Shown: one piece after another, positions 19,010 to 52,734 of the stretch
Numbering within the stretch: the first letter of the stretch is position 1
Layout: each line of letters begins with the position of its first letter
Virus record (IMG/VR): IMGVR_UViG_3300046167_000825
Coordinates: 225,015-289,014 of that record
Strand: one strand, 5' to 3'
Length of the DNA stretch: 64,000 bases
The notes under the pieces: model-generated
Databases searched by the model: none
Told to the model about the DNA's origin: nothing
The model's input: only the letters and a program-made list of their open reading frames with translations
Position numbers and translations under genes: made by a program

Positions 19010-19750
19010 ATGAGTTCTGGAATACCTAAACCAAATGTCAACAAACAAGAGATTCTTGAAGCCTTACCTTTGGAGATCAGCCGAATTGCGGTGACGACCA
19101 AAGAAGGGGAAGTCAAGTATCGGAAAGTCGAAGAAGTCGAACTAGAAGACATCTTGATGTTCAACAAGAGCAATCAACCCGTTGTGATGAGAGGCAAGGC
19201 TGGGAGACCCTCCGATCTCCCCACATTGGATTTGCCCTCTCTCCAAGACACAAGCAACTTTGTCCCTCTGCCAAATCGTCTGCAAAAACGAAAAGACTTG
19301 GCTGTTGCACAAACACCTCAGCCAACGGCTCTGAACTATCAAAATGATAGGGTTCTCGCACAAGTGAGTCAAGACCCCGAATCCTTAGATGTCCTCCATT
19401 CCGTGATGATGGGCTTGGCAGAAGAAGCAGCCGCTATGGCTCAAGCGAGAGTTTCACTTGAAGCACAAGGGAAGAACACCTCCAATGTGTCATCAAAGCG
19501 TGTATCGGCATTGCGAGCCATTGGTGATACATGGATGAAGCGAAAGGAACAGTTGGGGGGTAAGGGAATCGACTTGGAGGGTTTGGCTTTCAAGAGAGTT
19601 TTCGGATTCACAATGGAAACTTTTCGTAAAGCACTCACTCAATCCAACATTCGTCCAGAACAGATTGAGGTTATCTTCGCAAAACTAGCGAACTTGATGG
19701 GTGATGATTGGGTAACTGAAGCGAAGAAAAGAGCAGATGGGGATGACTAA
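19010..19750 (+). CDS. putative terminase small subunit
   Basis: Helical protein immediately upstream of and coupled to the large terminase; positional inference only. Confidence 0.4.
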   Translation: MSSGIPKPNVNKQEILEALPLEISRIAVTTKEGEVKYRKVEEVELEDILMFNKSNQPVVMRGKAGRPSDLPTLDLPSLQDTSNFVPLPNRLQKRKDLAVAQTPQPTALNYQNDRVLAQVSQDPESLDVLHSVMMGLAEEAAAMAQARVSLEAQGKNTSNVSSKRVSALRAIGDTWMKRKEQLGGKGIDLEGLAFKRVFGFTMETFRKALTQSNIRPEQIEVIFAKLANLMGDDWVTEAKKRADGDD

Positions 19751-21588
19751 TGTCTGGATTTCTTTCCGACATCGTGATGGGTGCTGGTCGTGTAAAAGGG
19801 ACTGAAAGTCGCTCCGTTGTTGACATCATCACTTTCATCGAAAGTGCATGGGGTTTGCAAATGCGATTATTCCCCGTTCAGAAAATCATACTGAAAGCAC
19901 ATTACGGTATCCCCCTAGATGACACAGAAAAGACAGTCCCTTATTCCGATTGGAGAAGGGAGAATGTCCAGATGCTGACAGAAGCCGAATACCTCCGATT
20001 ATTGCATAAAGAGGGTCGGTGTAATATCTCTGAGGTGACGGAAGGACACGAAAGACGAGAGATGATTTTATCTGTGGGGAGACGGAGTGGGAAGACAACA
20101 ATATCTGCTTGTATCGCTGCCTATGAAACATACAAGTTGATTTCCAAAGGTGACCCACAAGGGTTCTATGGTTTGCCTAGTTCCAACGTTATTCAGTTAA
20201 TAAGTGTTGCGACAGACAAAGACCAAGCGGGATTACTCTACAACGAGGTGAGTGGTCACTTTCGCAATTGCTCTTTCTTCACTCCCTACTCTGCTAACAA
20301 CACCATGTCCTATGCGAGATTTCAAACCCCTATGGACATTGAAAGATATGGCTCTTATTCAGAGGACAACAGTGCCAACGCCAATATCAAAGTGACCTTC
20401 CGTTCTTGTGTTGCGAAGGGGCTTCGTGGGGCTGGTAATATCTGTGTTATCCTTGATGAGGTCGCTCACTTTACAGACAAGGGACAAAGTGGTGCAGAAG
20501 CCGTATATAACGCTGTGACACCTTCTACCTCAGCCTATTCACAGAAAGACCCCAACAATAAATCAAAGCCCATAGGTGAGGTTGAGGGGCGTATTATATC
20601 CATCTCCTCTCCATTGGGGAAACAAGGGTTGTTCTACAAATTGTTTAATACAGCATTTCGTGGTGGAGCAGCCAGTGCTAATATGTTGGCTGTTCAAGCA
20701 CCCACTTGGGAAGTGAATCCCACTGTTCCAGCCACCGAGTTCGCTAAACATTATGTTAAAGACCCTCGTGTGTTTTTCACGGAATATGGGGCTGTGTTCT
20801 CTGACCGAACAAGAGGTTGGATAGAGGATTCCAAAGACCTCTTGGCGTGCGTGGATGACTCCCGAAAAGAAGTTAAAAAAGGCAAAACACGAGTTCCCTA
20901 TTTCATGGGAATCGACTTGGCTCTTGTTGGTGATGGCACGGCTGTGGCTATTGGGCATCTCGAAGAGATTGATGGGGAGAATAAGATAATCCTCGATCTC
21001 ATAGCCCATATTAAGGCTGGAGAAGGGGATTATGCTGATAGGGAACGCTTGGAGTTCGATGATGTGGCTGATTGGATACTCGGTTGGACAAAGAAGTTCT
21101 ATGTGAAAGAAGGTATCTTCGATCAATGGGCTGGGATTCCTTTTGAGCAAGCCCTCGCCAAAAGAGGTTTGAAGAATATCAAGTCTACACACTTCACCAA
21201 GAATCTCACATCACAGATATTTCAGAACTTCAAAGATTTGATGTTCGACAAGAAAATGATTCTCTATAATGACCCAGTACCCAAAGACGGTGAACTGTGT
21301 CCCTACTTAGAGGAAATTATGGAACTCCAAGCCGAGATCCATAGCAAGCACATCATCACGGTGGCTGCCCCTCAAGTCGAAGGAAAGCATGACGATATGT
21401 CGGATGCTTTAGTTCGGATGGTTTGGTCGGCTTCCCAGAATATCACAAAGCAACTGCGTGTTTCTATGGCGAATGGTCGTAATGCCTTCGGTCATCAAAC
21501 CACCACAAGTGACCTAGTTCGTAGGCGAACTAGAGCCTTACAAAAGGGGTCACACCCATCCCGTCAATCACGCAAATGGCGAAAATAG
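19750..21588 (+). CDS. terminase large subunit
   Basis: GRRSGKT Walker A, VILDE Walker B, ISS coupling motif, RNase H-like GIDLA and HDDMSDA. Confidence 0.93.
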   Translation: MSGFLSDIVMGAGRVKGTESRSVVDIITFIESAWGLQMRLFPVQKIILKAHYGIPLDDTEKTVPYSDWRRENVQMLTEAEYLRLLHKEGRCNISEVTEGHERREMILSVGRRSGKTTISACIAAYETYKLISKGDPQGFYGLPSSNVIQLISVATDKDQAGLLYNEVSGHFRNCSFFTPYSANNTMSYARFQTPMDIERYGSYSEDNSANANIKVTFRSCVAKGLRGAGNICVILDEVAHFTDKGQSGAEAVYNAVTPSTSAYSQKDPNNKSKPIGEVEGRIISISSPLGKQGLFYKLFNTAFRGGAASANMLAVQAPTWEVNPTVPATEFAKHYVKDPRVFFTEYGAVFSDRTRGWIEDSKDLLACVDDSRKEVKKGKTRVPYFMGIDLALVGDGTAVAIGHLEEIDGENKIILDLIAHIKAGEGDYADRERLEFDDVADWILGWTKKFYVKEGIFDQWAGIPFEQALAKRGLKNIKSTHFTKNLTSQIFQNFKDLMFDKKMILYNDPVPKDGELCPYLEEIMELQAEIHSKHIITVAAPQVEGKHDDMSDALVRMVWSASQNITKQLRVSMANGRNAFGHQTTTSDLVRRRTRALQKGSHPSRQSRKWRK

Positions 21589-21870: not shown

Positions 21871-22170
21871 ATGGGAAGATACAGAGCAAGAAACACAGAC
21901 CCCGTTGAAAGGGATGTTCATAAGAACATAGCCGAAGCCGAGCGTTATCTGAAAAGAGCGTTGTCGGTTCTTTCTTCTGTTCGTGGGAATCCCTCTATAC
22001 GGAAAGCACGGTATAATCAACTAGAGCAAATGCTCCAAGAATCCGTGAAGGTTTTATCTTCTCCTCCTCGATTGACACATGCTCATGATAAAAACGACCC
22101 CGACTTGAATCCAAAGGTCGCAGAGGAACAACGGAAAAAACGAATGGAACGGAAAAGAGGTGATAAATGA
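21871..22170 (+). CDS. basic hypothetical protein
   Basis: ATGA overlap with portal. Confidence 0.6.
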   Translation: MGRYRARNTDPVERDVHKNIAEAERYLKRALSVLSSVRGNPSIRKARYNQLEQMLQESVKVLSSPPRLTHAHDKNDPDLNPKVAEEQRKKRMERKRGDK

Positions 22171-23849
22171 CAAAAAAATCTGGTGTGGCAGTCGGTAAAG
22201 TTCCTTCTCGTGCGAAAGTACACACGGGAAAACCTCGTAAAGTTGTGGCTAGTTCAATGAAAGTTGGTGGGTTACAGACCTATTCTGGTGGCGAAGGGTC
22301 TGGTGGGAACTTCTATTCTCCCGAACTGAGTACCGATTTCCTTGAACTCCCACAGAGTATGCACGAGAGATGGAATTACTTCCGTTTCTTCTATCGTTCA
22401 GAACCTTTCGTGGGTCAAGCGATTGATCTTCACACCGAACTTCCCCTTTCAAAAATCCGTCTGGGTTTCCCGAACTACATCAAAGACAGAGAGATGGCGA
22501 AGGAGGCATTGGACTTCTGTCAGAAGTGGTCTAGGAAAATCGGATTACTTCACCGTTTGATTGAGATCGTCCATGAATACAATCTCATTGGTGAAGTGTT
22601 TATCTTCATGGAAGATGTGACTTCAGACCCACCCGATGATCTTAAATATGAAGTCAGACGAGAACTGCTTGATGATGGGACAGTCCAAGAGGAACTTGTA
22701 GAACGAGAGGATGCCAAAGAACTGCAAGTGAAATGGTTGAAAAAGAACTACAAGGGTTGGACAGCCCTCCGAGTTCTCCCCCCAGAGCAAACCCATGTTC
22801 AATCGTTTCCATTCACGGATGAGAAGATTATTGAACTTATCCCCGATTCTAAAACAAAGGACATTATCTCACAAGCAGATAGTGGTGACCCAACAGCAAA
22901 GCGTATTGTGGACTCCATGCCTAGAGGTGTGGTGGAAGCCGTCCTTGAAGGGAAGAATATCCCCTTGAACACCGATCCAGATGCGGGTTCTTTCGTCTGC
23001 TATCTCGCTCGTAAGAAATCACAGTATGAGGACAGAGGGCATTCCATCCTTGAGAGATGTATCCGAACTCTCGTGTTCCGAGATAAACTTCGTCAAGCCA
23101 ACACTTCTATCGCTTCAAGGCACATGACCCCCATCCGTTTGGTCTATGGTGAAGATATGGATCAAGCCGATGTGGAAGCATTGAGAGAGCAAGTGGATTT
23201 GGCTCTTGCTGATCCCGACTTCTCTATCATAGCGAACTTTGAAATCCGATGGGAGGAAATGGGTTCTGACCAACGCCTCCTTGATCTTGGTTCTGAATAT
23301 GACCTCACTGATCGTCAGTTGTATGCTGGTCTTGGTGTGACAGAAGGCTTACTCTCTGGTGAGAGTTCTTATAGTGGTGACCGTATCAACTTGGAAGTCA
23401 TCAACACGAGGTACATGCTTCTCCGAGAAATCCTACAAGACTTGGTTGAGGAGAAAATGCTCAAACCAATGTGTGCTAGGATGGGTTTCATTGAGGAAGA
23501 TGAATACGGAAATGAACATGTGGTTTATCCCACACTTTCTTTCACAAGACTTGCACTCAGAGATAACAATGACACTTTCGATGCCTTGTTCAATCTCTAT
23601 CAGAAGGGTTCATTGGATGTGGATATCATCTTGGAACTCTTGAACATTGACCCAGTAGCAACCAAAGAGAAACTAGAACGAGATATGTTCACACTCAACG
23701 ATAGTCAGTTCAATGAGGTTCTACGAGGTATCTATGGTGAGGCTGGTCGTGCATTAGCCGAGAACTCAGATGCCCTTGAAAAGATAGCCGAGAATCTAGG
23801 TCTGACCTACGAGAAGCCCGAAGAAGAAGGTGGCGGTGGTAGATTCTGA
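22167..23849 (+). CDS. portal protein
   Basis: 560 aa after terminase; EPFVGQAID, GEVFI, RGHSILE, AGLGV motifs typical of portals. Confidence 0.85.
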   Translation: MTKKSGVAVGKVPSRAKVHTGKPRKVVASSMKVGGLQTYSGGEGSGGNFYSPELSTDFLELPQSMHERWNYFRFFYRSEPFVGQAIDLHTELPLSKIRLGFPNYIKDREMAKEALDFCQKWSRKIGLLHRLIEIVHEYNLIGEVFIFMEDVTSDPPDDLKYEVRRELLDDGTVQEELVEREDAKELQVKWLKKNYKGWTALRVLPPEQTHVQSFPFTDEKIIELIPDSKTKDIISQADSGDPTAKRIVDSMPRGVVEAVLEGKNIPLNTDPDAGSFVCYLARKKSQYEDRGHSILERCIRTLVFRDKLRQANTSIASRHMTPIRLVYGEDMDQADVEALREQVDLALADPDFSIIANFEIRWEEMGSDQRLLDLGSEYDLTDRQLYAGLGVTEGLLSGESSYSGDRINLEVINTRYMLLREILQDLVEEKMLKPMCARMGFIEEDEYGNEHVVYPTLSFTRLALRDNNDTFDALFNLYQKGSLDVDIILELLNIDPVATKEKLERDMFTLNDSQFNEVLRGIYGEAGRALAENSDALEKIAENLGLTYEKPEEEGGGGRF

Positions 23850-24227: not shown

Positions 24228-24611
24228 CTATGCAGATTTGCGTTGTTGTGAAATGATTTGATGAGTACCAACTAGGGAGTTGTTGAGGGCATGCTCTATG
24301 GCTCTTTGGTCTATATCAAGACGGTCATCAAGCCATCGACCTAAAGCGATGGTGTGCTTACATAAGCGACCGAAACCACCAGCCTCACAAGTGCAACGAA
24401 CACTCTTTGTTTTGAGATTCACTCTCGTGGTATAAACTTCCGAGCCAGATATGGGTGTGTGGGTCATCCCCGTAATCAATCCCGCATCGACATCGAATGA
24501 CGGTGACATCACAGCCACCTTTGATGCTTTTATTCGGGTGTCCTTTGACACTTTGCTCTCAAGCCGTTGGATGGTTTCTCGTAATATCGTAGTTTGGTTC
24601 AGTATATTCAT
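24228..24611 (-). CDS. SWIM zinc-finger protein
   Basis: CTC...LCKH. Confidence 0.75.
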   Translation of the reverse strand: MNILNQTTILRETIQRLESKVSKDTRIKASKVAVMSPSFDVDAGLITGMTHTPISGSEVYTTRVNLKTKSVRCTCEAGGFGRLCKHTIALGRWLDDRLDIDQRAIEHALNNSLVGTHQIISQQRKSA

Positions 24612-24682: not shown

Positions 24683-25069
24683 TTAGTTCTCTCGGTTTTC
24701 TAGTTCCATCTCAAAGAGTTCAACGGCTTCTGTCAAGCCATGCTTTTTCAATAGTTCGATGGCGTACTCATCACACATATCTTCATTGAGAGAACGGAAG
24801 TGTATATGCCCTAGTTCGTGTGCTAAGATAATAAAGAGGTGGTCAGCCGAGAACCAGTCACTGCTAAATAATCTCCTATCAAGTAATATCAGAGGCTGAG
24901 GTACATCTTCCCAAGCAGCAAAAGCGTGAGAGGTTTCAAACATCGACATTTCAAAGTGCCACTTGGAATCTTCGGGGAGGACGAAGGTATCAGTGGCTGG
25001 ATCTAGACATAGAACTAGCACCTTTTCGTCAAGGGGGCAGATAAACTGTTGGTATTGTGCTAAATCCAT
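24683..25069 (-). CDS. HExxH zinc metallopeptidase (ImmA/IrrE-like)
   Basis: ILAHELGHIH...E..CD..A. Confidence 0.7.
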   Translation of the reverse strand: MDLAQYQQFICPLDEKVLVLCLDPATDTFVLPEDSKWHFEMSMFETSHAFAAWEDVPQPLILLDRRLFSSDWFSADHLFIILAHELGHIHFRSLNEDMCDEYAIELLKKHGLTEAVELFEMELENREN

Positions 25070-25119
25070 AATCTCTTTATAGAACTCCTATATCAAACGC
25101 CTTATTGAAGGAAAATCGA

Positions 25120-28050
25120 ATGTATGTCTTTTTGAAAAAAACGTGGAATGGTGCAGTTTATAGTCTCTCTCTGAGAGATGATGCTTTCATTCATTTCACA
25201 CCCCAAAGTAGAGCGAGAGAGATACTTGCCTCTGGTCGGTTACTGTTCAACCCTCCTTATAAGAAGTTTGGGATAGATTCCGTCACAGCCATCTCAACCT
25301 CTTTCGGGAGTGCTGTCGCTGGTGTGCAAACAACACACATTAAAGAAACACCCGATGACCCCATCGTTGCCCTTTGGTTCAAAACGAACACCCTCCCCCC
25401 GAAAATAAACTATCCCGAAGAAGTCTATTGGAGTTCGGACGTGGTTTTCACAAAGGTCAAACTTCTCACCAAGCGGGAGGGTCTCTCTATTCTCAGTCGG
25501 TCTAAGCCCCCAACAAAGGACGACTTCTCAGTGGTGTATGAAGGTTCACCTTCTCATAAACAACTACGGACAGCCAAATACAAGAACAAGAAGACCGTCA
25601 AAGACCAAGACGGGAAAGACATGATCGTCTATGAGTATTCAGACCAGCAGATCAATAAGCGACATAAAGAGAAATCCCAAAAGGTCGAGAAAATCCGTCA
25701 GAATATAAACTCTTTGGAAACGCAAGTTCTCAAAGACCTCAAAAAAGAGGATACCCGTCAAGTAGCACTGGCGGTCGCCCTCATCAATCACACATACGAG
25801 CGTGTAGGGAACGATGATAGTGCTTCCAATGGTCACTATGGGGTAACGGGGTGGAAGAAGAAACATTTGTCTTTCAAGGGAAGCAAAGCCTTCCTCTCAT
25901 ACACGGGTAAGAGTGGTGTTCGTCATAATAAAGAGGTCGATGACAAGGTGTTGGTGTCAGCCCTCCGAGAGATATCGAAAGGTTTGAAAGATGACGATGT
26001 TCTTTTGTCAGACATTAAAGCCCCCGATGTCAATGAGTATCTCAACCAGTATGGGATCACAGCGAAAGACATGCGAGGTTACCATGCCAACAGAGAAATG
26101 CAAGAACGCTTGAAAGCCCTCCGAGAGGAAAGGGGCGAACTACCGAAGGACAAGAAAGAGAAGGACAAGATTCTTAAAGAGGAGTTTAAGGAAGCCCTCA
26201 ATGGAGCAGCGAAAGCCGTTGGTCATGAAGAAGCAACATTAAGAGGGCAGTACTTAGTCCCCCATTTGGAAGATACCTTTATGAAAGATGGCACAGTGAT
26301 AACCACTTTGAAGAAAGCACATATATCAAGAATCGCCACGAGAGTCTTCGGTACAAAAACAGAAAATGAAAAGATGGATGAGGAAGCCGATAGATTGGTG
26401 AAGAAACAACCCAAAAGTAAACCACCTCGCAAAGACCGTCAGCGAAGAAGAATCGACATAGGGGATAAGGACACCACTGAGGACAAGGATTTGAACTCAA
26501 AGGATATGTCGATGAACTACAAGGTGATTGGTGGTTCGTTGGGTGGTGTCATAACGAGAGTTGCTTCTCGTTATATGCTGCTCTCTCGGCTATCCGAGAG
26601 ATATCTGTCAGCGACCACTGAAATTGTGGAAACACCCAATCAAAAAGACACCGATAAGAAGGAAAAAGAGGACAAAAAAAAAGAGTTAGTTCGGAAGAAA
26701 GAAACCGAAGCGTGGGATAAGTTCACGGGGGAAAAAATCAAAGACCCCGAATCCAAAAGAGAAGTTTCGTGGGGTACTTTCCAGAAGAAACACCCCAAAG
26801 ATGCTCAGAAAATCCGTAACAAGTTTCGGACAGACTTTGAGGAATCCTTTAAGGAAGACCAAGTCAATAAAGAAAATGAACAAGCCCAGAAACTAGATAG
26901 ACGGCTCACCGAAGAAGAACTGGCAGAAGTTGATAATATGGTGGAGGAGGTGGTTAACCTCAATGGGCGTGAGATACGCCTCCCATTCGACACAGATGAC
27001 CGTGTTCGTAGTGTTTCGATGGCTCTTGAAGAACCAAAAAGAGATGATGAAACTGTTGAGGACTACAACTCTCGTAAGGCAGAAGAGATTTCTAAGTCTA
27101 TTAGAGGGATGGATACCAAAGCCCTCCAGCAGTTGTGGGATAGTGGGATGATTGATAAGAGTGACCCTCGTGTCAATGATGCGATAGATACCATGATGTC
27201 TATGGATGCAATGGGGGATGTTGTGGGTCGTCCTTTATCGGAGTCTGAAGCCAAAGCCATAGAAGATTTCTATTCTGCTATGCTGACGGAAACCATTAAG
27301 GTCGAGCATTTTGGTAGCGATAAAGAGGAAGGGAAGAGTTTCATTGCTGATTTCGTGGAGGGAGCGAAGAACTCAGCAGTGGAGGCTCTTAAAGAATCTG
27401 AGGATGCCGATTTAGGTGCAGTCATGAAAGATTATCTGTCTAATGCTACGACCAACAAGGAAAAGAAGACACTCAAAATCCACCACATCACAAAAGAGTT
27501 CATGTCAAAGGAACAGAAGGAGGCATTGAAAAGCCTAGAAGAATCTCAGAAGAAAGTGGAGTCCATTCGGAAAGAGAAGCAAACCCAAATGGATCAACTA
27601 TCCGAGATTGATAAAACTCTCTCGACTGAAGATATCAGTGATGAGGACAGAGAACAACTAGAAACGGATAAGGCTTCCCTTCAAAAGAGTGTTGATAGCC
27701 AAGAGGGGCTTCTGAAATCTGAGATGGAAAATCAACAATCCCTCACAGAAAAAACACAACCTAGTTCAGAGAACTTACAGAAGGCACTGGATAAAATGAT
27801 TCAGAAACTCCCAAAAGAAATCCAAAAAGAATATAAGGATTTCGGGAACACAGAGGAAATGATTGAAAAGGTCTTTGAACTCACTCAAGCAGAAGCCTTG
27901 AAGAAGTATGAGGAGATAATTGAAAACTCTAGCATGCCCCCCGAAGAAAAAAAGAAAGCCCTAGAAAGAGCCAAAGACCCTAATTTTGATCCAGAGGGAG
28001 CGTTGGCTGGTATGATGTCAGAGAGTGACGACATCGAAAATGAGATATAA
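25120..28050 (+). CDS. multi-domain protein: ART-like N-terminal domain + DNA topoisomerase IB core + tag motifs + charged coiled coil
   Basis: Topo IB catalytic residues ERVGN, GKSG, KDMR, VGH, QYL; N-terminal HFT..RA.EIL.SG.L. Confidence 0.8.
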   Translation: MYVFLKKTWNGAVYSLSLRDDAFIHFTPQSRAREILASGRLLFNPPYKKFGIDSVTAISTSFGSAVAGVQTTHIKETPDDPIVALWFKTNTLPPKINYPEEVYWSSDVVFTKVKLLTKREGLSILSRSKPPTKDDFSVVYEGSPSHKQLRTAKYKNKKTVKDQDGKDMIVYEYSDQQINKRHKEKSQKVEKIRQNINSLETQVLKDLKKEDTRQVALAVALINHTYERVGNDDSASNGHYGVTGWKKKHLSFKGSKAFLSYTGKSGVRHNKEVDDKVLVSALREISKGLKDDDVLLSDIKAPDVNEYLNQYGITAKDMRGYHANREMQERLKALREERGELPKDKKEKDKILKEEFKEALNGAAKAVGHEEATLRGQYLVPHLEDTFMKDGTVITTLKKAHISRIATRVFGTKTENEKMDEEADRLVKKQPKSKPPRKDRQRRRIDIGDKDTTEDKDLNSKDMSMNYKVIGGSLGGVITRVASRYMLLSRLSERYLSATTEIVETPNQKDTDKKEKEDKKKELVRKKETEAWDKFTGEKIKDPESKREVSWGTFQKKHPKDAQKIRNKFRTDFEESFKEDQVNKENEQAQKLDRRLTEEELAEVDNMVEEVVNLNGREIRLPFDTDDRVRSVSMALEEPKRDDETVEDYNSRKAEEISKSIRGMDTKALQQLWDSGMIDKSDPRVNDAIDTMMSMDAMGDVVGRPLSESEAKAIEDFYSAMLTETIKVEHFGSDKEEGKSFIADFVEGAKNSAVEALKESEDADLGAVMKDYLSNATTNKEKKTLKIHHITKEFMSKEQKEALKSLEESQKKVESIRKEKQTQMDQLSEIDKTLSTEDISDEDREQLETDKASLQKSVDSQEGLLKSEMENQQSLTEKTQPSSENLQKALDKMIQKLPKEIQKEYKDFGNTEEMIEKVFELTQAEALKKYEEIIENSSMPPEEKKKALERAKDPNFDPEGALAGMMSESDDIENEI

Positions 28051-28173
28051 TCTCATGTCTCATTCAAAATATATTCAAACAAAATAAATAATCATTCTAT
28101 ATCAAACACTATATTGTCGATAGCCCTCAGAGGGGTTCTTATGACAATTTTATCTTATTGGGAGGCTTATACC

Positions 28174-28839
28174 ATGAAAAAATTCGCTACACGGGCAATT
28201 GTTGCTGATCTAGACAACCTTGCTGATCTTTTCCAAAACGCTGGTTCTGAACTCGGTGTTCCAACTCGTATCGCTATGGATTTCGCATATCGTTGTGACC
28301 TTTTGTCTGATGTCATCGAAAAATTGGCTGGTGACGAAGAAGCAGAAGAGGAAGAGGAAGAAGAAGAAGTAAAAGAAGAAGAAACTGAACTAGAAAAGAA
28401 GGCTTTTGCTGCATTACAAACTTTATCTCGTCTTGCTTCTGAAGAAGAAGAAAAGGAAGAAGAGAAGGAAGAAGAGAAGGAAGAAGAAGCAGAAGAAGAG
28501 GCAAAGGAATCTTCTAAAAAGGCTACTTTGAAAGAACTTTCTCGTTTAATCAATCGTCTTGCTGGCGATGATGAAGAAAGCGAAGAAGAAGAAAAGGAAG
28601 AAGAAGCAGAAGAGGAAAAGGAAGAAGCAAAAAAAGAGGCTCGTCAAATAACAAAACGCCAAGCCCTTGCTACCCTTCTTCGTATTGCTGAAGAAGAAGA
28701 AAAAGAACTGGGACAACAAGAGGATCAAGCCCTTGAAACTGAAACTGATGAGCCTTATATGAAGGGCTTTTCTGAAGGTTCAAAGGATGTAGCCGAGGTT
28801 GCTAAGGCTGCTGCGACTTACCGTAAACGTCTTAAGTAA
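28174..28839 (+). CDS. Glu-rich prohead core or scaffold-like protein
   Basis: Poly-E tracts alternating with amphipathic helices ending in [KR]xA. Confidence 0.65.
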   Translation: MKKFATRAIVADLDNLADLFQNAGSELGVPTRIAMDFAYRCDLLSDVIEKLAGDEEAEEEEEEEEVKEEETELEKKAFAALQTLSRLASEEEEKEEEKEEEKEEEAEEEAKESSKKATLKELSRLINRLAGDDEESEEEEKEEEAEEEKEEAKKEARQITKRQALATLLRIAEEEEKELGQQEDQALETETDEPYMKGFSEGSKDVAEVAKAAATYRKRLK

Positions 28840-28852
28840 AAAGAGGTCTCCC

Positions 28853-29437
28853 TTGAAGAAACAATCTGCAAGATATGATCTTCTCGCTGAGGAGTTGTCC
28901 GTTGGGGATGCTGTCATCCCCATCGGTCAGCCCATTGGTGGTGTTGGTCGAATTACGAAAATCTATGTCGGCATTGGCATGGCAGATGTTCAATTCAATG
29001 GGGGTAATCGTAGGATTCCCGTTGAGGACTTGAAGTTTGTTGCTGAGGAGGGATATTCTTTTGCTCCCGATCACGACACAACTGCTGGTGGAGAGATTGA
29101 TGAAGAACCCTTTGGTTCTCGTGAACTCTCAGTTCAACCACCTCATGAGGCTTTCACACCCGTGTTGAATGATATGTTCTATGAACAGACTCTTCCAACA
29201 AAGGTCGCCCAACGCTTTGTGAAAAAAGCATTGTATTGGGCTGGTCGTGATCGTAAATATCGAGCCACGAGATCCGAGTGTGGTGCTTCCTATCTATGTC
29301 CAAAGTGTGTAGACCCCATTGTGATGAAGAAAGCCATCTACAAACGGTTAGAGGGTGCTTCCGAGCGTCTGTGGGGTTGCCCCTCTTGTATGTTCTTAAT
29401 CAAGGACACTGACATTGTGCGTTGGGGGGGTGAATAA
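28853..29437 (+). CDS. SH3-like + zinc-ribbon protein with KVAQRFV tag
   Basis: TTG start after GAGG; CPKC...CPSC. Confidence 0.6.
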   Translation: MKKQSARYDLLAEELSVGDAVIPIGQPIGGVGRITKIYVGIGMADVQFNGGNRRIPVEDLKFVAEEGYSFAPDHDTTAGGEIDEEPFGSRELSVQPPHEAFTPVLNDMFYEQTLPTKVAQRFVKKALYWAGRDRKYRATRSECGASYLCPKCVDPIVMKKAIYKRLEGASERLWGCPSCMFLIKDTDIVRWGGE

Positions 29438-30849
29438 TGGCATTTATGAAATATGCTTCTGCTCTTGTGGTTTCTCCCGAAGCCAATCAAAGAACTTGGG
29501 GTGGTGTTCGCACTGCCTCTAGTAATACAGCCAATCTGGTTGGTCAAGCCGAGAAGATTTTCGGTGGGAAGTTCAATCCCTCTGATTATCTTTTAACACA
29601 TTGTACTATTGTGGCTTCTGTTGATACAGATGATGCTCCCAATGTAAAACTCGGTTCTGTCACTGAGAATGGTAAGAAGATCAATCGTAAGTATTCTAAC
29701 TATCTCATAACTCCTTCGACATCTAAGTATGTGAATAACAACGGAGATTCTTGGGATCGTGATGTTCTGTTGAAGTCTTATCAAACATTTGTTGGTAGTC
29801 ATAACTTCCAAGAGCATGTTCAGATTGAGGACTTGTCGAAGGGTCGTATCATTGATGCCGTTGCTCGTGATGTCGGGGAATCTATTTATGTGGATATCCT
29901 AGTTGCGACAGACCGTAAGCACGCCCAGTTGGTTGAAGATATCCAGAGTGGTCGTTTAGGCACATTGTCTATGGGATGTACAGTCGATAGCACCATTTGC
30001 ACCAAGTGTGGGAATGTGGCAGTCGATGACACTGAGTTCTGTGACCATGTGAAGTATGAAAAACGAAACACTTTTATTGATAACAGTGGCAAGAAAAGAA
30101 TAGTGGCTGAGTTGTGTGGTCATACCGATATGGGCGACACGGCTGGAGTGACATTCATAGAAGCCTCTTGGGTTGCTGTACCCGCCTTTACTGGTGCAGT
30201 AATGCGAAATATTTTAACGGCAGACGAGGTTAGTTCGGATGTAGTTCGTAAAGCGAACGAGATTCTTTCAGTGCCTCCAGCCGAATGGTCAGACGAAGCC
30301 CAAAAGAAAGTCGCACGGAATGTGGTGTCTTTCGGTTTCGATGACGAAGAAGAAGATGAGGGTGGCGATAGCGAACCCACATCCCCTATTGATGAATTAG
30401 AAGATGAGATGGTATCAATGGTGAAGAAACGAGTTCTTCAACGGCTTAAATCCGAAATGTCCCCCAAAGAGGAGGCAAAGAAAGATGCACCAAAGCCCGA
30501 AGATAGTACCACTTATCAAAATGATACAGTGATCAAAGAAGGCACACTAAGAAAGGCTCACGCTATGGGTCAAAAACTTGGTGTTCTTCAAGGGATCGCA
30601 AAGGTTTCTCACACCAGAGAAGATTTTATTGATGGTATTGCTCTCCTTGATTATGAGAGGGGTTCAAAAACATCGGTATCTGTTTATCGTGCCAGCCTAA
30701 AGGTCGGTTCGGTATCAAAGTACGCCACACTGAAAGGTTTCTTGCTTGCTAGTAAGAAGGCTCTCGGTGGTACGATGACTAAATCTGAGGTTACTCAGAT
30801 GATTCGACTCGCTCGATTGCTTGACTTTTGGTCAGCACAAAAACATTAA
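29437..30849 (+). CDS. prohead maturation protease
   Basis: H(N)FQEH, LSMGC, FIEASWVAVPA motifs; located before scaffold and capsid genes. Confidence 0.75.
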   Translation: MAFMKYASALVVSPEANQRTWGGVRTASSNTANLVGQAEKIFGGKFNPSDYLLTHCTIVASVDTDDAPNVKLGSVTENGKKINRKYSNYLITPSTSKYVNNNGDSWDRDVLLKSYQTFVGSHNFQEHVQIEDLSKGRIIDAVARDVGESIYVDILVATDRKHAQLVEDIQSGRLGTLSMGCTVDSTICTKCGNVAVDDTEFCDHVKYEKRNTFIDNSGKKRIVAELCGHTDMGDTAGVTFIEASWVAVPAFTGAVMRNILTADEVSSDVVRKANEILSVPPAEWSDEAQKKVARNVVSFGFDDEEEDEGGDSEPTSPIDELEDEMVSMVKKRVLQRLKSEMSPKEEAKKDAPKPEDSTTYQNDTVIKEGTLRKAHAMGQKLGVLQGIAKVSHTREDFIDGIALLDYERGSKTSVSVYRASLKVGSVSKYATLKGFLLASKKALGGTMTKSEVTQMIRLARLLDFWSAQKH

Positions 30850-30882: not shown

Positions 30883-31911
30883 ATGCGTAGAAGCAGACTT
30901 ACTTGGAATAAAAAGGCAGATAATGCCCCCGCTACCCCAAATGAGGGGTATGACCATCCAGCAGATCAAGGACAACAACCCGTTGAGAAATACTTCATTG
31001 ACAACGATGGAAACGGTGTTGGTTCAGAACCTTCAGATTTCGCAGAAGATGTTCACCAACCACCTTATAACAAAGGTGACCACCCAGCGACTCCACACGA
31101 GGGACACGATCACCCAGCGATGAAACAAGCCGCTCGTGATATCCGTGCTTCTGTTGAGCGTAAAGCATCTAAATGTATTCGTATCGCACAAGCAACACTC
31201 GGAAAAGGTGCTTCTATTGAAGACTTAGAAGATCAAGCATTGGCATTCATGAATATGGCTGATGATGATGTTGCTGCAACTTTGGATCGTATGTCAGAAA
31301 TGGAAGCGTACCAAATGGCAGAAGAACCAACTGCTACTTCAATGTTCGCAGAAGAAGATTCTGAACTAGAAGGTTTGATGGCTGAGTTCATGGCAGAAAT
31401 CGAATCAGATGAACACGAAAGTACAGAAGAAGCAATGCTTTCTGAAATGCTTGCTCAAGAAGAAGCCGAAGAAACAATGGGCGAAGAAGAAATAATGCTT
31501 TCTGAAATGCTTGCCGAAGAAGAAATGGCTAACCAAAATGCTCCAGAACACTTTGAAGCAGAAGAAGAAGAAGCAATGGGTGATGAGTTAATGCTTGCCG
31601 AAGAAGGTCTTGATGCTATGGGACTTGATGACGGTATGGGCGATGACGAATTGCTTGCTGGATTGTTCGCTGGTAAGTTCGCTGGTGAAGAAGAAGCCGA
31701 AGAAGAAGAAGCAGAAGAAGAAGCAGAGGAAGAAGAAAAAGAAGCAGAAGAAGCAGCCGCTTCTAAGAAAGCATCTCGCCTTCGTCCCCGTGCTCGTAAA
31801 GCATCAAAGGGAGTTAAGACTCTTGGAAATGTTTCTAAAACAGCCTCTTCAGAAATGAACGAACTGTCAAAGTTGTGGGAAAGTGCTCCTAACATCAGTG
31901 ACTTGTTCTAA
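30883..31911 (+). CDS. scaffolding protein
   Basis: Very acidic, E/M/A-rich, between protease and capsid genes. Confidence 0.7.
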   Translation: MRRSRLTWNKKADNAPATPNEGYDHPADQGQQPVEKYFIDNDGNGVGSEPSDFAEDVHQPPYNKGDHPATPHEGHDHPAMKQAARDIRASVERKASKCIRIAQATLGKGASIEDLEDQALAFMNMADDDVAATLDRMSEMEAYQMAEEPTATSMFAEEDSELEGLMAEFMAEIESDEHESTEEAMLSEMLAQEEAEETMGEEEIMLSEMLAEEEMANQNAPEHFEAEEEEAMGDELMLAEEGLDAMGLDDGMGDDELLAGLFAGKFAGEEEAEEEEAEEEAEEEEKEAEEAAASKKASRLRPRARKASKGVKTLGNVSKTASSEMNELSKLWESAPNISDLF

Positions 31912-32124: not shown

Positions 32125-32775
32125 ATGGCTTTACTTGGACAAGCGAGTGGTGCGTTTACAGAAAGTTCTTCATCTTTACGGATTCTACATGTTGGTATCC
32201 GAAACACTGTCGGTGTTATTACAGATGAGGCTTTCGAGCAAACTAACCCTCCCGTACTTTCTGCATCTGGTGCTGGATCTACCATCTCAGATCAAGTATC
32301 TACAACAATCTTCGGAGTTCTCTCTGGATCTGTTGCTTTCACTCGACCAGACATTGACGAAAATGTAATCGGTGGCCCAGCGGCTACTGCTGCTTTGTTG
32401 CTTTCTGCTGGATGTCGACCACTTGGTGTATTCATTAACCACGCTGCTGGATATTCTTTCGAGAACACACCCGCGGCTGCTTCTAACAAGTGTCCTTATG
32501 TTTCTGCACAAGGTTGCTATGCAAACTCTTTGTTTGAAACCAACATTATCACTAATGGTGGAACTACTGGTACTGCCGTTGCTGCTGTTGCTACTGTACC
32601 AGTTACTGCTTATGCTGCTGGACAAAACTTGGTTGCTTCTGTTAATGGTTACTTGACCAACGAAGCCGCTGACGGATATGAAGCGACACAAGGTGGAACT
32701 AATACTATTATCGGAATCGTGAAGATGGCCCCAGATAATACTCAAGATGAACTCGTTTACGACCAACGCATTTAA
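32125..32775 (+). CDS. capsid decoration/cement protein
   Basis: A/G/T-rich, directly upstream of MCP, highly biased codons. Confidence 0.65.
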   Translation: MALLGQASGAFTESSSSLRILHVGIRNTVGVITDEAFEQTNPPVLSASGAGSTISDQVSTTIFGVLSGSVAFTRPDIDENVIGGPAATAALLLSAGCRPLGVFINHAAGYSFENTPAAASNKCPYVSAQGCYANSLFETNIITNGGTTGTAVAAVATVPVTAYAAGQNLVASVNGYLTNEAADGYEATQGGTNTIIGIVKMAPDNTQDELVYDQRI

Positions 32776-32788
32776 GGAGGAGACTACT

Positions 32789-33658
32789 ATGAGCGTATCA
32801 AATGCTGTGAAGCAAAAAATCATTTCTGATTATATCAAGACTCCTCAAGGGCGTGCGAAACTTGCAGCGTCTATGACTCAACCATTACGTTTGCGTAGAG
32901 ATTACGCATCGGTTGGTCGTAAGACATTTCTTGTTGAACAACTGCCAGACGGAGCGTTGCCAATTTATGACAAAGATCCAGATGTAACTGCGTATGTGGT
33001 TGGTGAAGAAGGACAAAACATCCTTGCAATCACTAAGCCAAGACGTGTTATCTTTCCTTTGTTTGAGATTGCATCTAACCCCGAAATCCCTTTGACACAA
33101 ATCAAAGAAAGACGATTCGACCTTATTGAGCGTGCTCAAGATTTGGCTCGTGCCCAAATCCAAGCGGCAGAAGATGAGCGAGTATTCTCTACTCTTGATG
33201 CTGTTGCTCAGAACGGTTTCGATTCTGTTGGAAACCAAAACCCAGACATCCCAGTTGTTGCTCCAGTTACTGGTGCAGTCCTTGCTGATGCTTTTGCGTT
33301 AATCGAACGCCATGACCTTCGTGTTGCACGAATCTTCATGAACGCTCGTGACTATGCAGATTTGCGTAAGTTCGGTCGTGACATCTTGGATATCGAATCT
33401 CAGCGTGACTTGTTGAAGACTGGTCTTATGGCTACTCTTTGGGGTGCTCAGATCATCACTTCTCGTATCGTTCCCGTTGGAACAGTATATGTTGCTTGTG
33501 AGCCAGAGTTCTTTGGTCGCATGCCAGTTCGTACTGAGTTGACTGTATTGTCTGCTGATGATCCAAAGGCTCGTACTATTGGGTTCTCTGTATTCGAGAA
33601 TATCGGTATCGGTTGTTTCAATCCTCGTGGATTGGTTCGATTGTCTATCACTCGATAA
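32789..33658 (+). CDS. major capsid protein (HK97 fold)
   Basis: AGGAGG RBS, strong codon bias; IQAAEDERVF, IFMNARDYADL, LWGAQII motifs; followed by a terminator. Confidence 0.88.
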   Translation: MSVSNAVKQKIISDYIKTPQGRAKLAASMTQPLRLRRDYASVGRKTFLVEQLPDGALPIYDKDPDVTAYVVGEEGQNILAITKPRRVIFPLFEIASNPEIPLTQIKERRFDLIERAQDLARAQIQAAEDERVFSTLDAVAQNGFDSVGNQNPDIPVVAPVTGAVLADAFALIERHDLRVARIFMNARDYADLRKFGRDILDIESQRDLLKTGLMATLWGAQIITSRIVPVGTVYVACEPEFFGRMPVRTELTVLSADDPKARTIGFSVFENIGIGCFNPRGLVRLSITR

Positions 33659-40137: not shown

Positions 40138-40524
40138 ATGAAGAAAAAAGCAACAAGTTCCTACGCTTCTTGGGCGTTATTAAGTGAGGGTGTTTCCTCT
40201 GCGAGAGTTGAAGCCTATCGGTTAAGACACCTCGTCAATCGTGCTATGGCTCTCATTGAGCAATCTGTTGCCAAAGACCATCTGTATCAAGTGGCTGGAG
40301 ATATCATTATGGGTGTGCCTTCCCGTCTTGATAGGATAGAACAAACACTTGATAGAACTTCTTACGCTTTAGCGAAGATGGGGGATGCTCATCTCAAACA
40401 ACGCCTTCCTATCCACGATAGAGAAATGGTGGAAGAAAGTATCCAACGGGCTGACTTATTGAATCCGTCTTTTTCAAAGATGTCTTCTAATGTCGCTCAA
40501 AGATTCTTGGATACCGATAAATGA
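40138..40524 (+). CDS. probable internal head protein (C-terminal NVAQRFL tag)
   Basis: MKKKA start; late motif at 40082. Confidence 0.65.
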   Translation: MKKKATSSYASWALLSEGVSSARVEAYRLRHLVNRAMALIEQSVAKDHLYQVAGDIIMGVPSRLDRIEQTLDRTSYALAKMGDAHLKQRLPIHDREMVEESIQRADLLNPSFSKMSSNVAQRFLDTDK

Positions 40525-41537
40525 AAAAAGAAGCCCTTTCTAAATTACCCAGCGAACTGTCGGGTCAGAGAACCTTTGTACGGGATGAATCTAGTCGTGG
40601 GACACCCACAGACACAGATAGAACCCCTCAGAGTGTCTTGCCTCCCGATAAGGCGACACCTCGTTCTCCTTCTCGTGAAGATAGTAATAAGAAAGACAAT
40701 GTTTCTCATCTCGGCCCCACTTATTTCAATGTTCCCGATGGGACAGCCAAAGAAATCAAGCATAGGACTGTTCCAGCAGAGGGTGAGCAGTATGGGCATC
40801 CTTATCAGAATGGAGTGAATACTCTCAGACATCGTGTCGATCAGCGAACTGGCTCAGAGGAACTAGCCGAATCTATTGAAGCCATCTCCGATGTTTATCT
40901 CGGAGAGTTTGACGAACTAGATGACGACTTTGATGATGAAGGACTCACAGCCGAAGAAATAGAGGCGACTTCTCGGAGATGGAAAGGGAAACGCAGACCA
41001 TCAAAAGGTCGTGTGAGAACACGCCCTAGAAATGTCCGAACTAGATCAAAAAGATTGAGAAATCGTTCGAGAGGCAACAAAAGAAACAAGTATCAATACA
41101 ACTCCAAAACTAAGAAAGTAGAGAGAGTTAAACGGAAGCCGAAAGAGATACTCAATCGTCAGAAATATGACAGAGATTATAATCGAAGACAACGGAAACG
41201 GAATCCATCCACTCGAAAAAGACAGAGAGGATATTACAAAAAGAGAGCCACTGATATGAACTTGGAAGCAATACAAAGTGTGATGGCAGACATGGGTTTG
41301 TACGAAATCCGACCACCGAAGACAGACGAGTTGTATGTCCCAAGTGGTGTGCCTTACTCCCCCTCTGGTGGGAATGGCTATTGGAAAAGAGACCTCCCCA
41401 ATAGAAACCGAAAGCCCAGTGAGAGGCAAGACACCTCAAGAGAGCCGTCAGACATCGGAAACTCATCGAGAGTCGTACCTCAAGGGCAGTATGTCAAAGC
41501 GAGTATACGAGTGGCTTATCGCTTCTTGAATGGGTGA
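40521..41537 (+). CDS. probable internal head protein with acidic and Arg/Lys-rich blocks (C-terminal RVAYRFL tag)
   Basis: MKKEA start; protamine-like block. Confidence 0.7.
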   Translation: MKKEALSKLPSELSGQRTFVRDESSRGTPTDTDRTPQSVLPPDKATPRSPSREDSNKKDNVSHLGPTYFNVPDGTAKEIKHRTVPAEGEQYGHPYQNGVNTLRHRVDQRTGSEELAESIEAISDVYLGEFDELDDDFDDEGLTAEEIEATSRRWKGKRRPSKGRVRTRPRNVRTRSKRLRNRSRGNKRNKYQYNSKTKKVERVKRKPKEILNRQKYDRDYNRRQRKRNPSTRKRQRGYYKKRATDMNLEAIQSVMADMGLYEIRPPKTDELYVPSGVPYSPSGGNGYWKRDLPNRNRKPSERQDTSREPSDIGNSSRVVPQGQYVKASIRVAYRFLNG

Positions 41538-41896: not shown

Positions 41897-41963
41897 GAAT
41901 CTCAAGGTAGCCTTTTTACCACGAACGGTATAGTAGAATATATCTTTGAAACTCGGTGGAAGA

Positions 41964-43163
41964 ATGATTATCACTCACGCAAAAAAACCAACGGATAAAA
42001 AAGCCTATAAATATCTCTCTTTGTTTAGTGGTATTGAGGCAGCAAGTGTCGCTTGGAAGGACTTCGGATGGTCTTGTGTCGGTGTCAGTGAAATTGACCC
42101 CTTCCCTTGCGAGGTCTTAAAGAATCGTTTCCCCAATGTACCTAATTTGGGTGACATCACAAAAATCACAGAGGAGCAATTAAATGATCTCAAACATAGA
42201 CACGGAGGAATTGACATCGTGGTTGGCGGAAGTCCTTGTCAATCCTTCTCTCTCGCTGGAAAACGACTTGGACTCAAAGATCCGAGAGGCAATCTTATGT
42301 TTGAATATTGCCGAGTTGTTCGAGCCGTACTCCCGAAGTACTTCATCTGGGAAAATGTCATTGGAGCACTTTCAAGCAACGGAGGAAAAGACTTTTCTTC
42401 CCTCATCGGGGAAATGGTTGACATCGGGTATAGTTTGTGCTGGAGAGTGTTGGATGCACAACACTTCGGAGTCCCCCAAAGAAGGCGTAGAGTCTTCCTT
42501 GTCGGAAGTCTTGGAGAAAACAACCGTGCCTTCGACATATTATTTGAGCAAGAGGGCATCACAAGGGATCTTGTCTCGTGCCGAAAAGCGAGGGAAAACA
42601 ATCCCCACCCAGTTGAAGGAAGCATTGGAAACGATAGCCCACAAATAGCCTACAATATCACATTCAATGATGCGAACGGCAGAAGGAAAGATAGACCACA
42701 CGGTGGCTGTTATATCAATGAAACAAATACAAGTAATGCCATAACAACTGGTGGTGTGTCTGACACTCGCATTGTAGAGAGTGTTGGTGAATACTATGAG
42801 CATCACCAACAAGATAGTAGAATTAAGGGGCCAAAAAATATTGGTAGCACTGTCACGGCAATGTATGGGACTGGTGGTGGGAATACCCCCCTTGTACTAG
42901 AATCTCAATCAGAGATGGCTGGCATTGCTCCTTCCGTGAATGAAATGAGGGGTTCTGATGCTGTTCGTCTAACCGCAAAAGTTCGCAGACTCACCCCCCT
43001 AGAATGTGAAAGACTTCAAGGCTTCCCCGATAACTGGACTGAGATTTCTTATCGGGGCAAGAGCAAAGAGAAATGCCCCATGAGTTCTCGATACAAAGCA
43101 TTGGGAAACAGCATGGCAGTTCCCGTGATGAGGTTTATCGGCTTGGGGATAATGGGGCAGTGA
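41964..43163 (+). CDS. C5 DNA cytosine methyltransferase 3
   Basis: SLFSGIE, GGSPCQSFS, ENV, PQRRRRVF, RRLTPLECERLQGFPD, GNSM. Confidence 0.93.
   Translation: MIITHAKKPTDKKAYKYLSLFSGIEAASVAWKDFGWSCVGVSEIDPFPCEVLKNRFPNVPNLGDITKITEEQLNDLKHRHGGIDIVVGGSPCQSFSLAGKRLGLKDPRGNLMFEYCRVVRAVLPKYFIWENVIGALSSNGGKDFSSLIGEMVDIGYSLCWRVLDAQHFGVPQRRRRVFLVGSLGENNRAFDILFEQEGITRDLVSCRKARENNPHPVEGSIGNDSPQIAYNITFNDANGRRKDRPHGGCYINETNTSNAITTGGVSDTRIVESVGEYYEHHQQDSRIKGPKNIGSTVTAMYGTGGGNTPLVLESQSEMAGIAPSVNEMRGSDAVRLTAKVRRLTPLECERLQGFPDNWTEISYRGKSKEKCPMSSRYKALGNSMAVPVMRFIGLGIMGQ
42184..42648 (+). CDS. nested alternative-frame ORF inside methyltransferase 3 (beta-subunit-like)
   Basis: 154 codons open across motifs IV-VIII; SSLSEVLE...YYLS.RA..GIL.RAEKRGK. 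Confidence 0.55.
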   Translation: MISNIDTEELTSWLAEVLVNPSLSLENDLDSKIREAILCLNIAELFEPYSRSTSSGKMSLEHFQATEEKTFLPSSGKWLTSGIVCAGECWMHNTSESPKEGVESSLSEVLEKTTVPSTYYLSKRASQGILSRAEKRGKTIPTQLKEALETIAHK

Positions 43164-44566: not shown

Positions 44567-44958
44567 AAATCGCTAAAACCATCCCAGAAATCCTATCTCA
44601 AACCGACAAGAAGATTCTTGGTCGTGCTAGGGGTGTGAATCCAACACTCAAGGGTCAAGAGGGGAAAGTGGTTCAGTATGAGGTGAAGGGTTCAAAGGCT
44701 TACACTATTGATGTGGAGTTTCGAGGAAATCATGTGAAGGTTCGGTGTTCGTGTGATGCTTTTGTTTTTCAAGGGAGTGAATATCACGCCAACAAGCAAA
44801 AGTTTCTGTATGGCAAAGCGAAGGGGAACTTAGCCGAACCCACTAAGCGTGACCCAGAGGGAAAGAACTTGGTATGTAAGCATATCGTGGCAGTATTTGA
44901 TAACATTGTGGGTAGTAGTATACAGCGAGTCGCTTCTCGTTATTTGTTTGATACTTAA
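44563..44958 (+). CDS. SWIM-type zinc-finger protein with C-terminal RVASRYL tag
   Basis: CSC.AF...CKH. Confidence 0.72.
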   Translation: MKIAKTIPEILSQTDKKILGRARGVNPTLKGQEGKVVQYEVKGSKAYTIDVEFRGNHVKVRCSCDAFVFQGSEYHANKQKFLYGKAKGNLAEPTKRDPEGKNLVCKHIVAVFDNIVGSSIQRVASRYLFDT

Positions 44959-52566: not shown

Positions 52567-52734
52567 CAAGGTTAAAACTGGCTTTTCGACTAGTTCGCTC
52601 ACTCTGTAGTTCGCTACTCGGTGGGCGAGTTTTGTTTTTAGTGCATCTACTGGGTTTGTGGGTTTTTCTCCCTTTACGAACCACGAAGTTTGTGCTATTC
52701 TATTCAAGAACACCTAGAAAGGAGATTCTTGGAT

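Follow-up and report, generated by a model that had tools for sequence, protein, structure and literature searches.

What is a predicted topoisomerase doing among the genes that build the head of a huge phage? The question is raised by a single gene in IMG/VR virus record IMGVR_UViG_3300046167_000825, a 289-kb record of an uncultured phage with a CheckV completeness estimate of 66%; a record of this length at this estimated completeness implies a huge phage. The stretch analysed here, called the window, is the terminal 64 kb of the record (64,000 nucleotides). The gene in question is a single intact open reading frame (ORF) on the plus strand (25105-28050), which probably starts at the ATG at 25120, behind GAAGGA, and then encodes 976 amino acids (aa); the homologues share the corresponding Met as their first residue. 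From N- to C-terminus, the protein comprises a domain with a predicted ADP-ribosyltransferase (ART)-superfamily fold, a type IB topoisomerase (Topo IB) domain, a motif that we call TAIL, short tag-like helices of the type RVAxRYL and a charged helical region. Two questions follow. First, what are these parts and how did they come together? Second, is the protein carried in the head? We propose that the gene encodes a modular head-associated cargo protein of the "polyvalent" kind, and we put the probability of this reading at roughly 55%.

The fusion is not an artefact of assembly, because the same ORF recurs on IMG/VR contigs L007 and L008, which come from other samples. The protein cluster of the Topo polyprotein (representative P0002) has 10 members. 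Residue 162 (window 25603-25605) is D in the window and N in P0002, the sequence used for the alignments and the model, and L007 and L008 display both variants; the conclusions are unaffected.

Membership of the central domain in the Topo IB family is secure. The excised segment aa 160-420 matches PF01028 with an E-value of 4.4e-25 and 88.8 bits against a cut-off of 23.7, and homologues are precomputed as PF01028. When the full-length 976-aa protein was used as the query there was no Pfam and no PHROGs match, and only the excised Topo segment scored. Against solved Topo IB structures, phmmer gave E-values of 1.5e-10 (6z01), 2.6e-6 (variola, 2h7f) and 4.9e-5 (D. radiodurans, 2f4q). Read from these alignments, the catalytic pentad is R228, K264, R319, H369 and Y378, of which the first three align with R130, K167 and R223 of the vaccinia/variola enzyme and the last two with N280 and Y289 of D. 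radiodurans, the equivalent His and Tyr positions. The pentad is invariant in 35 of 35 diverse homologous domains, with a mean column identity of 62%. The complete R-K-R-H-Y pattern named by the original prediction is therefore borne out, and the alignments support the presence of a complete, apparently active-site-competent predicted Topo IB in the head gene cluster. The two bounds that had been proposed for the domain, "RTA" and "KKA", are present as R150-T151-A152 and K398-K399-A400, and RTA is a degenerate copy of the RVAxRY helix described below; nothing shows cleavage at either of them.

Topo IB is the constant element of a large and variable family. A search with aa 1-430 returned 373 proteins, almost all of them long multi-domain phage proteins that have Topo IB in common. 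The modules joined to it are PAP2, LigT/2H, PolyA_pol, RNA ligase, NUDIX, cREC_REC, HAD_SAK_1 and GNAT, and further SOD, carbonic anhydrase, GGACT, Ham1, ParB_N, DUF5661 and LPD1. The N-terminal domain (N-domain) behaves in the same way. It is missing in the nearest relatives (P0005-P0011, 85% identical in Topo), which begin at "MTKRIAKYK"; its place relative to Topo varies, being N-terminal in part of the homologues and C-terminal in the rest; and elsewhere many other enzymes take its place, so that the swap among homologues that had been suggested as a check is indeed found. Residues 1-142 are a separate mobile module. The ART-fold domain and Topo IB, two unrelated modules, thus stand in one protein, modules are shuffled combinatorially among homologues, and the coding gene lies in a portal/terminase head context. 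These are the marks of the polyvalent proteins, for which Iyer et al. 2017 (PMC5512222) argue packaging and injection. The fusion partners around Topo are the typical repertoire of polyvalent proteins and follow their logic, and by architecture and context the Topo-ART fusion fits the polyvalent/ejection protein class.

The connection with the head is provided by TAIL, a motif of ~50 aa that occurs in one copy per protein, often at the extreme C-terminus, and in a single copy in the phage's own genome. Its pattern is G/A-TK..E.EDEEAERL...PK.KPPR.D..R.R....D.D....KD.S.NYK.(V/I)GG and its consensus is ATKT.AEREDEEAERLVR.SPK.KPPR.D.KR.R..V.DPD....DKDLSLNYKD.G. Eighty IMG/VR loci were scanned for homologues of the head genes of the window, and the count was limited to loci that differ in their Topo DNA and have 6 kb or more of downstream sequence, a head module being defined as at least two head genes. 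TAIL and head genes were found together in 43 loci, neither was found in 8, and no locus was discordant, the loci being phylogenetically non-independent. In a second layout, seen in 8 loci, TerL and portal flank a tagged stand-alone Topo gene (~350 aa), and the gene behind the portal begins with TAIL; the post-TAIL proteins of this layout have no Pfam domains. Where the Topo gene is located outside the head module, all five genomes concerned, two of which are 100% complete, keep a single gene with an N-terminal TAIL behind the portal. Since TAIL remains single and post-portal even where Topo lies elsewhere, it is the conserved core of a universal post-portal gene. Distant relatives keep the gene order: TerL and portal come before enzymes-Topo-TAIL, which is followed by the acidic protein, the Zn-ribbon protein, the protease and, at some distance, the major capsid protein. 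TAIL is a hallmark of the clade's universal post-portal head gene, and in the lineage of the window this gene has gained the ART-fold and Topo modules at its N-terminal end. The position of TAIL is the strongest argument, although an indirect one, that the enzymes are brought into the head.

The C-edge of TAIL lies at aa 466-476 (window 26515-26547). Homologues that end with TAIL stop at "...NYKDNG", "...NYKDVGG" or "...NYKDTGG", longer ones run on as "...NYK(V/I)GGS...", and several tagged proteins likewise terminate in G, GG or NG. These endings might reflect a flexible hinge or, alternatively, processing at Gly-Gly.

The second recurrent element is the RVAxRYL helix. Three tag-like helices had been noticed in the protein, and they read RIATRVF, RVASRYM and RLSERYL; the nearest relatives have three clean copies, and at the position of RIATRVF the homologues have RVAARYL, RVAALYL or RVASLYL. 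On the other side of the domain, "..LRVA-ARYK.." precedes Topo in most of ~60 loci, including the N-termini of stand-alone Topo genes. The tag was counted as R[VIL]A..[aromatic][hydrophobic], with the expectation taken from shuffled sequences. It occurs 164 times in 120 Topo polyproteins against an expected 4.3 ± 2.1 (~40-fold), 14 times in the 339 ORFs of the own genome (1.4 ± 1.4 expected) and 59 times in 964 non-Topo genes of 62 loci (5.6 ± 2.2 expected). Within the polyproteins the sites are directly before Topo, directly after Topo, after TAIL and at the protein ends. In the own genome the tags lie mostly within a few residues of the N- or C-terminus of a protein, for example "...IRVAYRFLNG*", "...QRVASRYLFDT*" and "MGNSSIRVAYRYL...". 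The tagged genes of the window (40521-41537, 44563-44958, 48878-49318 and 49322-50257(-)) encode otherwise unrelated proteins, and further tagged genes of the same genome (G000:C1) are located at 74648-76771, 76819-79140, 142220-142492, 200567-201571(-) and 133897-139215; none of the tagged stand-alone proteins of this genome had an informative Pfam or PHROG match. The convergent pair 48878-49318 (+) and 49322-50257 (-) recurs side by side inside the Topo polyproteins of other phages (P0050, aa 405-475 and 481-622; also P0026 and P0127). Most simply, each module would bring its own tag, and the polyproteins would be chains of such tagged modules. No cleavage motif emerged between the modules. 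The border tags fall where stand-alone homologues naturally begin or end, a pattern compatible both with the fusion of tagged modules and with processing. A similar helix, RVAxAFVKKALYW, is conserved clade-wide inside the Zn-ribbon head-module protein d212, where it starts at aa 135 in our phage, and the cargo tags might imitate it. In L035 (~9900-10000), a tandem "AAKY AAKY AAKY" repeat is located exactly at the tag/Topo junction.

The last part of the protein, aa 498-976, is conserved among near relatives only, as judged from the alignment, and has no Pfam match. Its AlphaFold2 (AF2) model is all-helical, with a predicted local distance difference test (pLDDT) score of 70, and matches generic coiled-coil hairpins, in agreement with the charged coiled coil expected at this end. 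An assignment to a particular fold was given up, the only matches being generic helical hairpins or coiled coils (CHMP4B, SMC, IpaB).

What, then, is the N-domain? Its AF2 model, computed with 19 homologues as input, has a pLDDT of 88.6. The model was compared with 48,161 PDB chains (VIA-align wide search), and nearly all of the best 50 matches, which were inspected, are ART-superfamily chains, with Z-scores from 6.6 to 3.3. They include KptA (6.6), TreTu (6.4), Tpt1 (5.3), DarT1 (5.2), CopC (5.1) and Arr (4.9) and, at lower Z, CC0527/DUF952, Tne2, PARPs and the diphtheria, pertussis and cholera-like (LT) toxins. These Z-scores are modest; the argument is carried by how uniform the list is. 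Foldseek, which the original prediction had recommended, likewise returned ART-fold matches, the best in the PDB being Thermus DarT (E 0.07); in BFVD the match was a putative RNA 2'-phosphotransferase of phage PaBG (probability 0.97), and Foldseek and the ESM Atlas agreed weakly on DarT, KptA, DUF952, Arr and the PaBG protein. The top Foldseek matches in Swiss-Prot, N-terminal domains of ice-nucleation proteins (E 0.05-0.25), were set aside as uninformative; KptA and DarT came next.

The sequence motifs of the N-domain are conserved. H25-F26-T27, R31-A32, I35-L36, G39..L41, S59 and E100-E101-V102 are invariant or nearly so in the 19 homologues and in 154 family representatives, so that the motifs noticed earlier (HFT..RA..IL..G.L, a central Ser and a late EEV) are all present and conserved; in the 154 aligned family members H25, S59, G63, F87, E101 and W104 are essentially invariant. 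In the model, H25 falls within a predicted strand (23-28) that is followed by a helix, and E101 of the pair E100-E101 opens the strand 101-104. The usual arrangement in ARTs is a strand-1 His (or Arg) contacting nicotinamide adenine dinucleotide (NAD+) and a catalytic Glu opening strand 5, both in one pocket. An ART-superfamily fold is thus supported by the model, and the N-domain is probably an NAD+-using enzyme. A profile search of 1.84 billion representatives gave a family of 332 clusters at 50% identity, for which there is no Pfam model; many members are stand-alone proteins of 140-200 aa, and ten further members had no ART Pfam match. Of the DarT-like ART that had been suggested, the ART-superfamily fold stands by model and fold search, and the identity with DarT does not: PF14487 has no match in the genome (the control genomes likewise had none), and the best match is the NAD lobe of KptA/Tpt1. 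KptA itself (PF01885) also has no match in the genome, whereas the controls matched in 3 genomes, and the structural alignment with KptA covers the NAD lobe only (chain residues 86-180), its N-terminal lobe being absent.

These matches leave room for an N-domain that does not modify proteins. It could instead be an NAD+ enzyme directed at nucleic-acid ends or bases, like KptA/Tpt1 or DarT, or an NADase, or a binding module without activity, in each case working with Topo and the RNA-repair modules. Such a role would agree with the best structural matches, namely KptA, Tpt1, DarT and the PaBG 2'-phosphotransferase, with the almost constant position of the ART-fold domain directly next to Topo, on either side, and with the 2H, cREC, HAD_SAK_1 and RNA ligase modules of the homologues, which partner KptA in RNA repair (PMC9503650). 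It agrees less well with the failure of PF01885 and PF14487 to match anywhere in the genome, with the missing KptA N-terminal lobe, with the scores of TreTu, Arr and the toxin ARTs, which are almost as good, and with the conservation of E101, a Glu in a transferase-type position pattern. KptA has, to our knowledge, no Glu corresponding to E101. We hold this alternative to be tentative, but well worth entertaining.

With regard to the second question, we start from what the sequences show: the identity of the domains, conserved active sites, swapped modules, a shared gene order and the TAIL and tag statistics. From these we infer the following scheme of packaging, ejection, substrates and timing. 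The C-terminal half of the protein (TAIL and the charged helical region) is the clade's universal post-portal head-module protein, to whose N-terminus the ART-fold and Topo IB modules, each bordered by an RVAxRYL-type helix, have been fused. TAIL and/or the tags would draw the protein into the assembling prohead beside the portal, and at infection it would exit with the DNA. Like the packaged poxvirus enzyme, Topo IB could then relieve the very long genome of torsional stress as it comes in, ahead of phage gene expression, and the ART-fold domain may modify a host or nucleic-acid target. The virion packaging suggested by the original prediction is favoured by context: the enzymes are fused to the one gene that, in this clade, is always behind the portal, and TAIL and head module co-occur without exception.

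Several observations weigh against such a cargo protein. The cultured portal relatives, Tunturi_5 (37%) and Bacillus phage G (28%), are devoid of TAIL and tags; no TAIL, Topo, ART-fold domain or tag was found in Tunturi_5 gp8, phage G gp15 or their neighbours. Because both phages are without TAIL and tags, their virion data are not transferable to the present case. In 8 loci the Topo polyproteins are located outside head modules and are without TAIL, and therefore linkage to the head is common, not obligatory. The likeness of the N-domain to ARTs is structural only and modest (Z of at most 6.6; Foldseek E of 0.02 or worse): the domain has no Pfam family at E <=10, and the assignment is drawn from structure because the 19-sequence profile of the domain finds no PDB chain at E <=10. 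Lastly, the 289-kb record, at 66% completeness, has no Macro, ARH or NADAR partner. A complex prediction for portal and TAIL gave a score of 0.00 with a partner pLDDT below 40 and is evidence for neither side.

The cargo reading can be taken further. TAIL might anchor the post-portal protein at the portal or core, RVAxRYL might be a portable sorting or docking tag for enzyme modules, separate or strung together, the tag might copy the d212 helix, Topo IB might be a near-universal cargo for the entry of 300-500 kb genomes, and the ART-fold enzyme might act on DNA/RNA ends or bases, not on proteins. In this extended form we consider the proposal somewhat improbable.

Could Topo IB serve the head without being cargo? 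As a packaging or assembly helper at the portal, it would swivel 300-500 kb of DNA during packaging or ejection, TAIL would tether it, and the ART-fold and other modules would be passengers. That Topo, unlike any other enzyme, recurs in nearly all fusions, that unfused Topo often lies between TerL and portal and that contigs of the clade reach 536 kb would all suit a helper, but in 8 loci the Topo gene is far from the head genes, beside anti-defence-like or replication genes, and the modules fused to Topo are enzymes of RNA repair and nucleotide metabolism, which have no packaging role. We also know of no phage that needs a topoisomerase at its portal, and we regard the helper as unlikely. Quite unlikely, finally, is a cytoplasmic multifunctional protein, late-expressed or otherwise timed, that acts for example in concatemer processing or pre-packaging relaxation with TAIL as a regulatory or interaction peptide that has nothing to do with capsid loading, for although tags also occur on genes beside the DNA methyltransferase and other non-structural genes, TAIL is strictly one per genome and directly behind the portal, the architecture is typical of polyvalent proteins, and, both here and in many loci, the gene lies on one strand with the scaffold-like, protease and capsid genes and at close spacing to them.

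The proposed head cargo has counterparts in several known systems. The Topo IB of poxviruses is carried in the virion and aids early transcription. The vaccinia/variola enzyme (PDB 1a41, 2h7f) has the same catalytic pentad and belongs to the same fold family as the phage enzyme. In contrast to it, the phage enzyme is fused to other modules, and the local similarity is only ~30%; the two align from vaccinia residue 63 onwards, so that the phage enzyme is without most of the N-terminal DNA-binding domain found in poxviruses. T4 Alt is a head-packaged ADP-ribosyltransferase, and the internal proteins of T4 have capsid-targeting sequences. Here, too, an ART-fold enzyme is proposed as head cargo and a short terminal peptide is common to several putative cargo proteins, but there is no sequence similarity to the T4 proteins. 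The targeting sequence of T4 is N-terminal and is removed by gp21, whereas the tag described here is an Arg-rich helix found at either terminus or between modules. KptA/Tpt1 and DarT share with the N-domain the predicted ART-fold NAD lobe and an H-x-T first strand followed by a helix; they differ from it in that no sequence model matches and the KptA N-lobe is missing and, for DarT, in that neither a DarG-type partner nor a Macro domain was found in the 289-kb record.

The polyvalent proteins (PMC5512222) are likewise long phage proteins that string together interchangeable modules (ART, 2H, NUDIX, GNAT, ParB), have their genes next to portal/terminase genes and, by prediction, are packaged in the virion and then injected; among the homologues of the present protein, one even has the LPD1 "large polyvalent protein-associated" domain. 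Different from them, the constant module here is Topo IB ("topoisomerase" occurs once in PMC5512222), the anchor is the ~50-aa TAIL and not MuF or portal, the RVAxRYL helix marks the module borders, and no Pfam model covers the ART-fold family. Within the polyvalent/ejection class, the protein is set apart by its Topo IB core, by TAIL as anchor and by the tags at its module borders. The giant phages SPN3US and phiKZ load many head proteins and have ejection proteins processed by the prohead protease (PMC5694885, PMC7411985, PMC10052503), and a prohead protease gene is found in the same cluster here as well. They are of a different lineage, however, and their A-X-E type cleavage motif is not evident here; for their ejection proteins no Topo IB is reported in the literature found. 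A "phage-specific topoisomerase I" has been described in the jumbo phages phiRSL1, Lu11, PaBG and Motura and linked to DNA topology and repair (Iyer et al. 2021, PMC7824862). The enzymes of these phages and of the Xanthomonas phages PhiXhv-12/15/16 have 32-34% similarity to ours over ~150 aa, but they are without TAIL or tag and are not described as head-module fusions. In our literature search, no description was found of a head-module Topo IB polyprotein, a TAIL anchor or border tags.

If it is packaged, the protein would be the bacterial-virus counterpart of the poxvirus virion topoisomerase, and a swivel would seem to be required when a very large phage genome enters the cell, which would answer how half-megabase DNA is managed ahead of gene expression. 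From TAIL and the RVAxRYL tag one could then predict, by sequence, what uncultured huge phages carry in their capsids, and both could be used for loading foreign proteins into capsids. The ART-fold family, with its many clusters, is a candidate NAD+-using enzyme family in phage-host conflict.

The surroundings of the gene are summarised in Table 1. Its position between portal and protease, noted from the start, is confirmed by the order TerL, portal, Topo polyprotein gene, protease and major head protein. Two extremely acidic Glu-run proteins of scaffold-like look (28114-28839 and 30883-31911) stand on either side of the protease gene; the start of the first is probably the ATG at ~28174 and not the TTG at 28114, as judged by comparison with L003.

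Table 1. Features of the Topo polyprotein gene and of the head gene cluster, in window coordinates
Feature	Position	Strand	Residues (aa)	Basis or remarks
Whole gene	25120-28050	+	976 aa + stop	predicted ART-fold domain, Topo IB, TAIL, tags, helical C-terminal region
Predicted ART-superfamily-fold domain	25120-25545	+	1-142	AF2 model, fold searches, conservation
Degenerate border tag LRTAKYK	25564-25584	+	149-155	N-edge of Topo; consensus LRVAARYK
Predicted Topo IB catalytic domain	25567-26355	+	150-412	PF01028, PDB phmmer alignments, invariant pentad
Degenerate tag RIATRVF	26329-26349	+	404-410	C-edge of Topo
TAIL motif	26350-26535	+	411-472	alignments, head-module co-occurrence
Two tag helices, RVASRYM and RLSERYL	26557-26610	+	480-497 (480-486, 490-496)	
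Charged all-helical C-terminal region (model)	26611-28047	+	498-976	long helical hairpin ~aa 790-910; conserved C-terminal end
11-mer CTATATCAAAC	25088-25098	+		22 nt upstream of ATG 25120
TerL	19750-21588			context of head cluster
Portal protein	22167-23849	+		phrog_16240, E 4e-32; mean column identity 66% over 31 loci
Zn-ribbon head-module protein d212 (CxxC...CxxC)	28799-29437	+		conserved; internal tag-like helix KVAQRFVKKALYW
Prohead protease-like protein	29437-30849	+		phrog_18299 head maturation protease, E 1.7e-13; homologous to phage G gp19
Major head protein	32747-33658	+		phrog_2522, E 1.4e-55

The "late motif" said to precede the gene holds in part. The exact 11-mer does stand upstream, but it is shared by two adjacent genes only, its two exact copies in the window (25088-25098 and 28097-28107) lying upstream of the Topo polyprotein gene and of the next gene. 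It is not conserved in the closest relative, L003, and is absent from the related loci except for copies of the same phage; a sigma-70 scan for a promoter gave background level.

Three small minus-strand genes separate the portal gene from the Topo polyprotein gene. One of them (24683-25069) is divergent and has a HELGH zincin motif with a weak Peptidase_M48 match, and another (24228-24611), also divergent, has a weak SWIM zinc finger match; both are conserved in the closest relatives only. The HExxH gene was considered as a processing peptidase and dropped: being kept only in the closest relatives, it is not a feature of the family.

Downstream of the head module lie a DNA methyltransferase gene (41946-43163; phrog_116, E 2e-93) and two adjacent paralogous HNH endonuclease genes (52690-53973 and 53970-55469; phrog_559). 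In L006 and L005, where the Topo polyproteins are outside head modules, the neighbours are AcrVA2-like, patatin, Acb5, EAD1, DNA methyltransferase and RNase HII genes, and these surroundings look like anti-defence or replication neighbourhoods. In L012, L015, L019, L046, L054 and L072 the protease homologue is broken into 2-4 separated matches over 3-4 kb, which suggests insertions (inteins, introns or homing elements) in the gene; TerL and portal are likewise split in some related loci.

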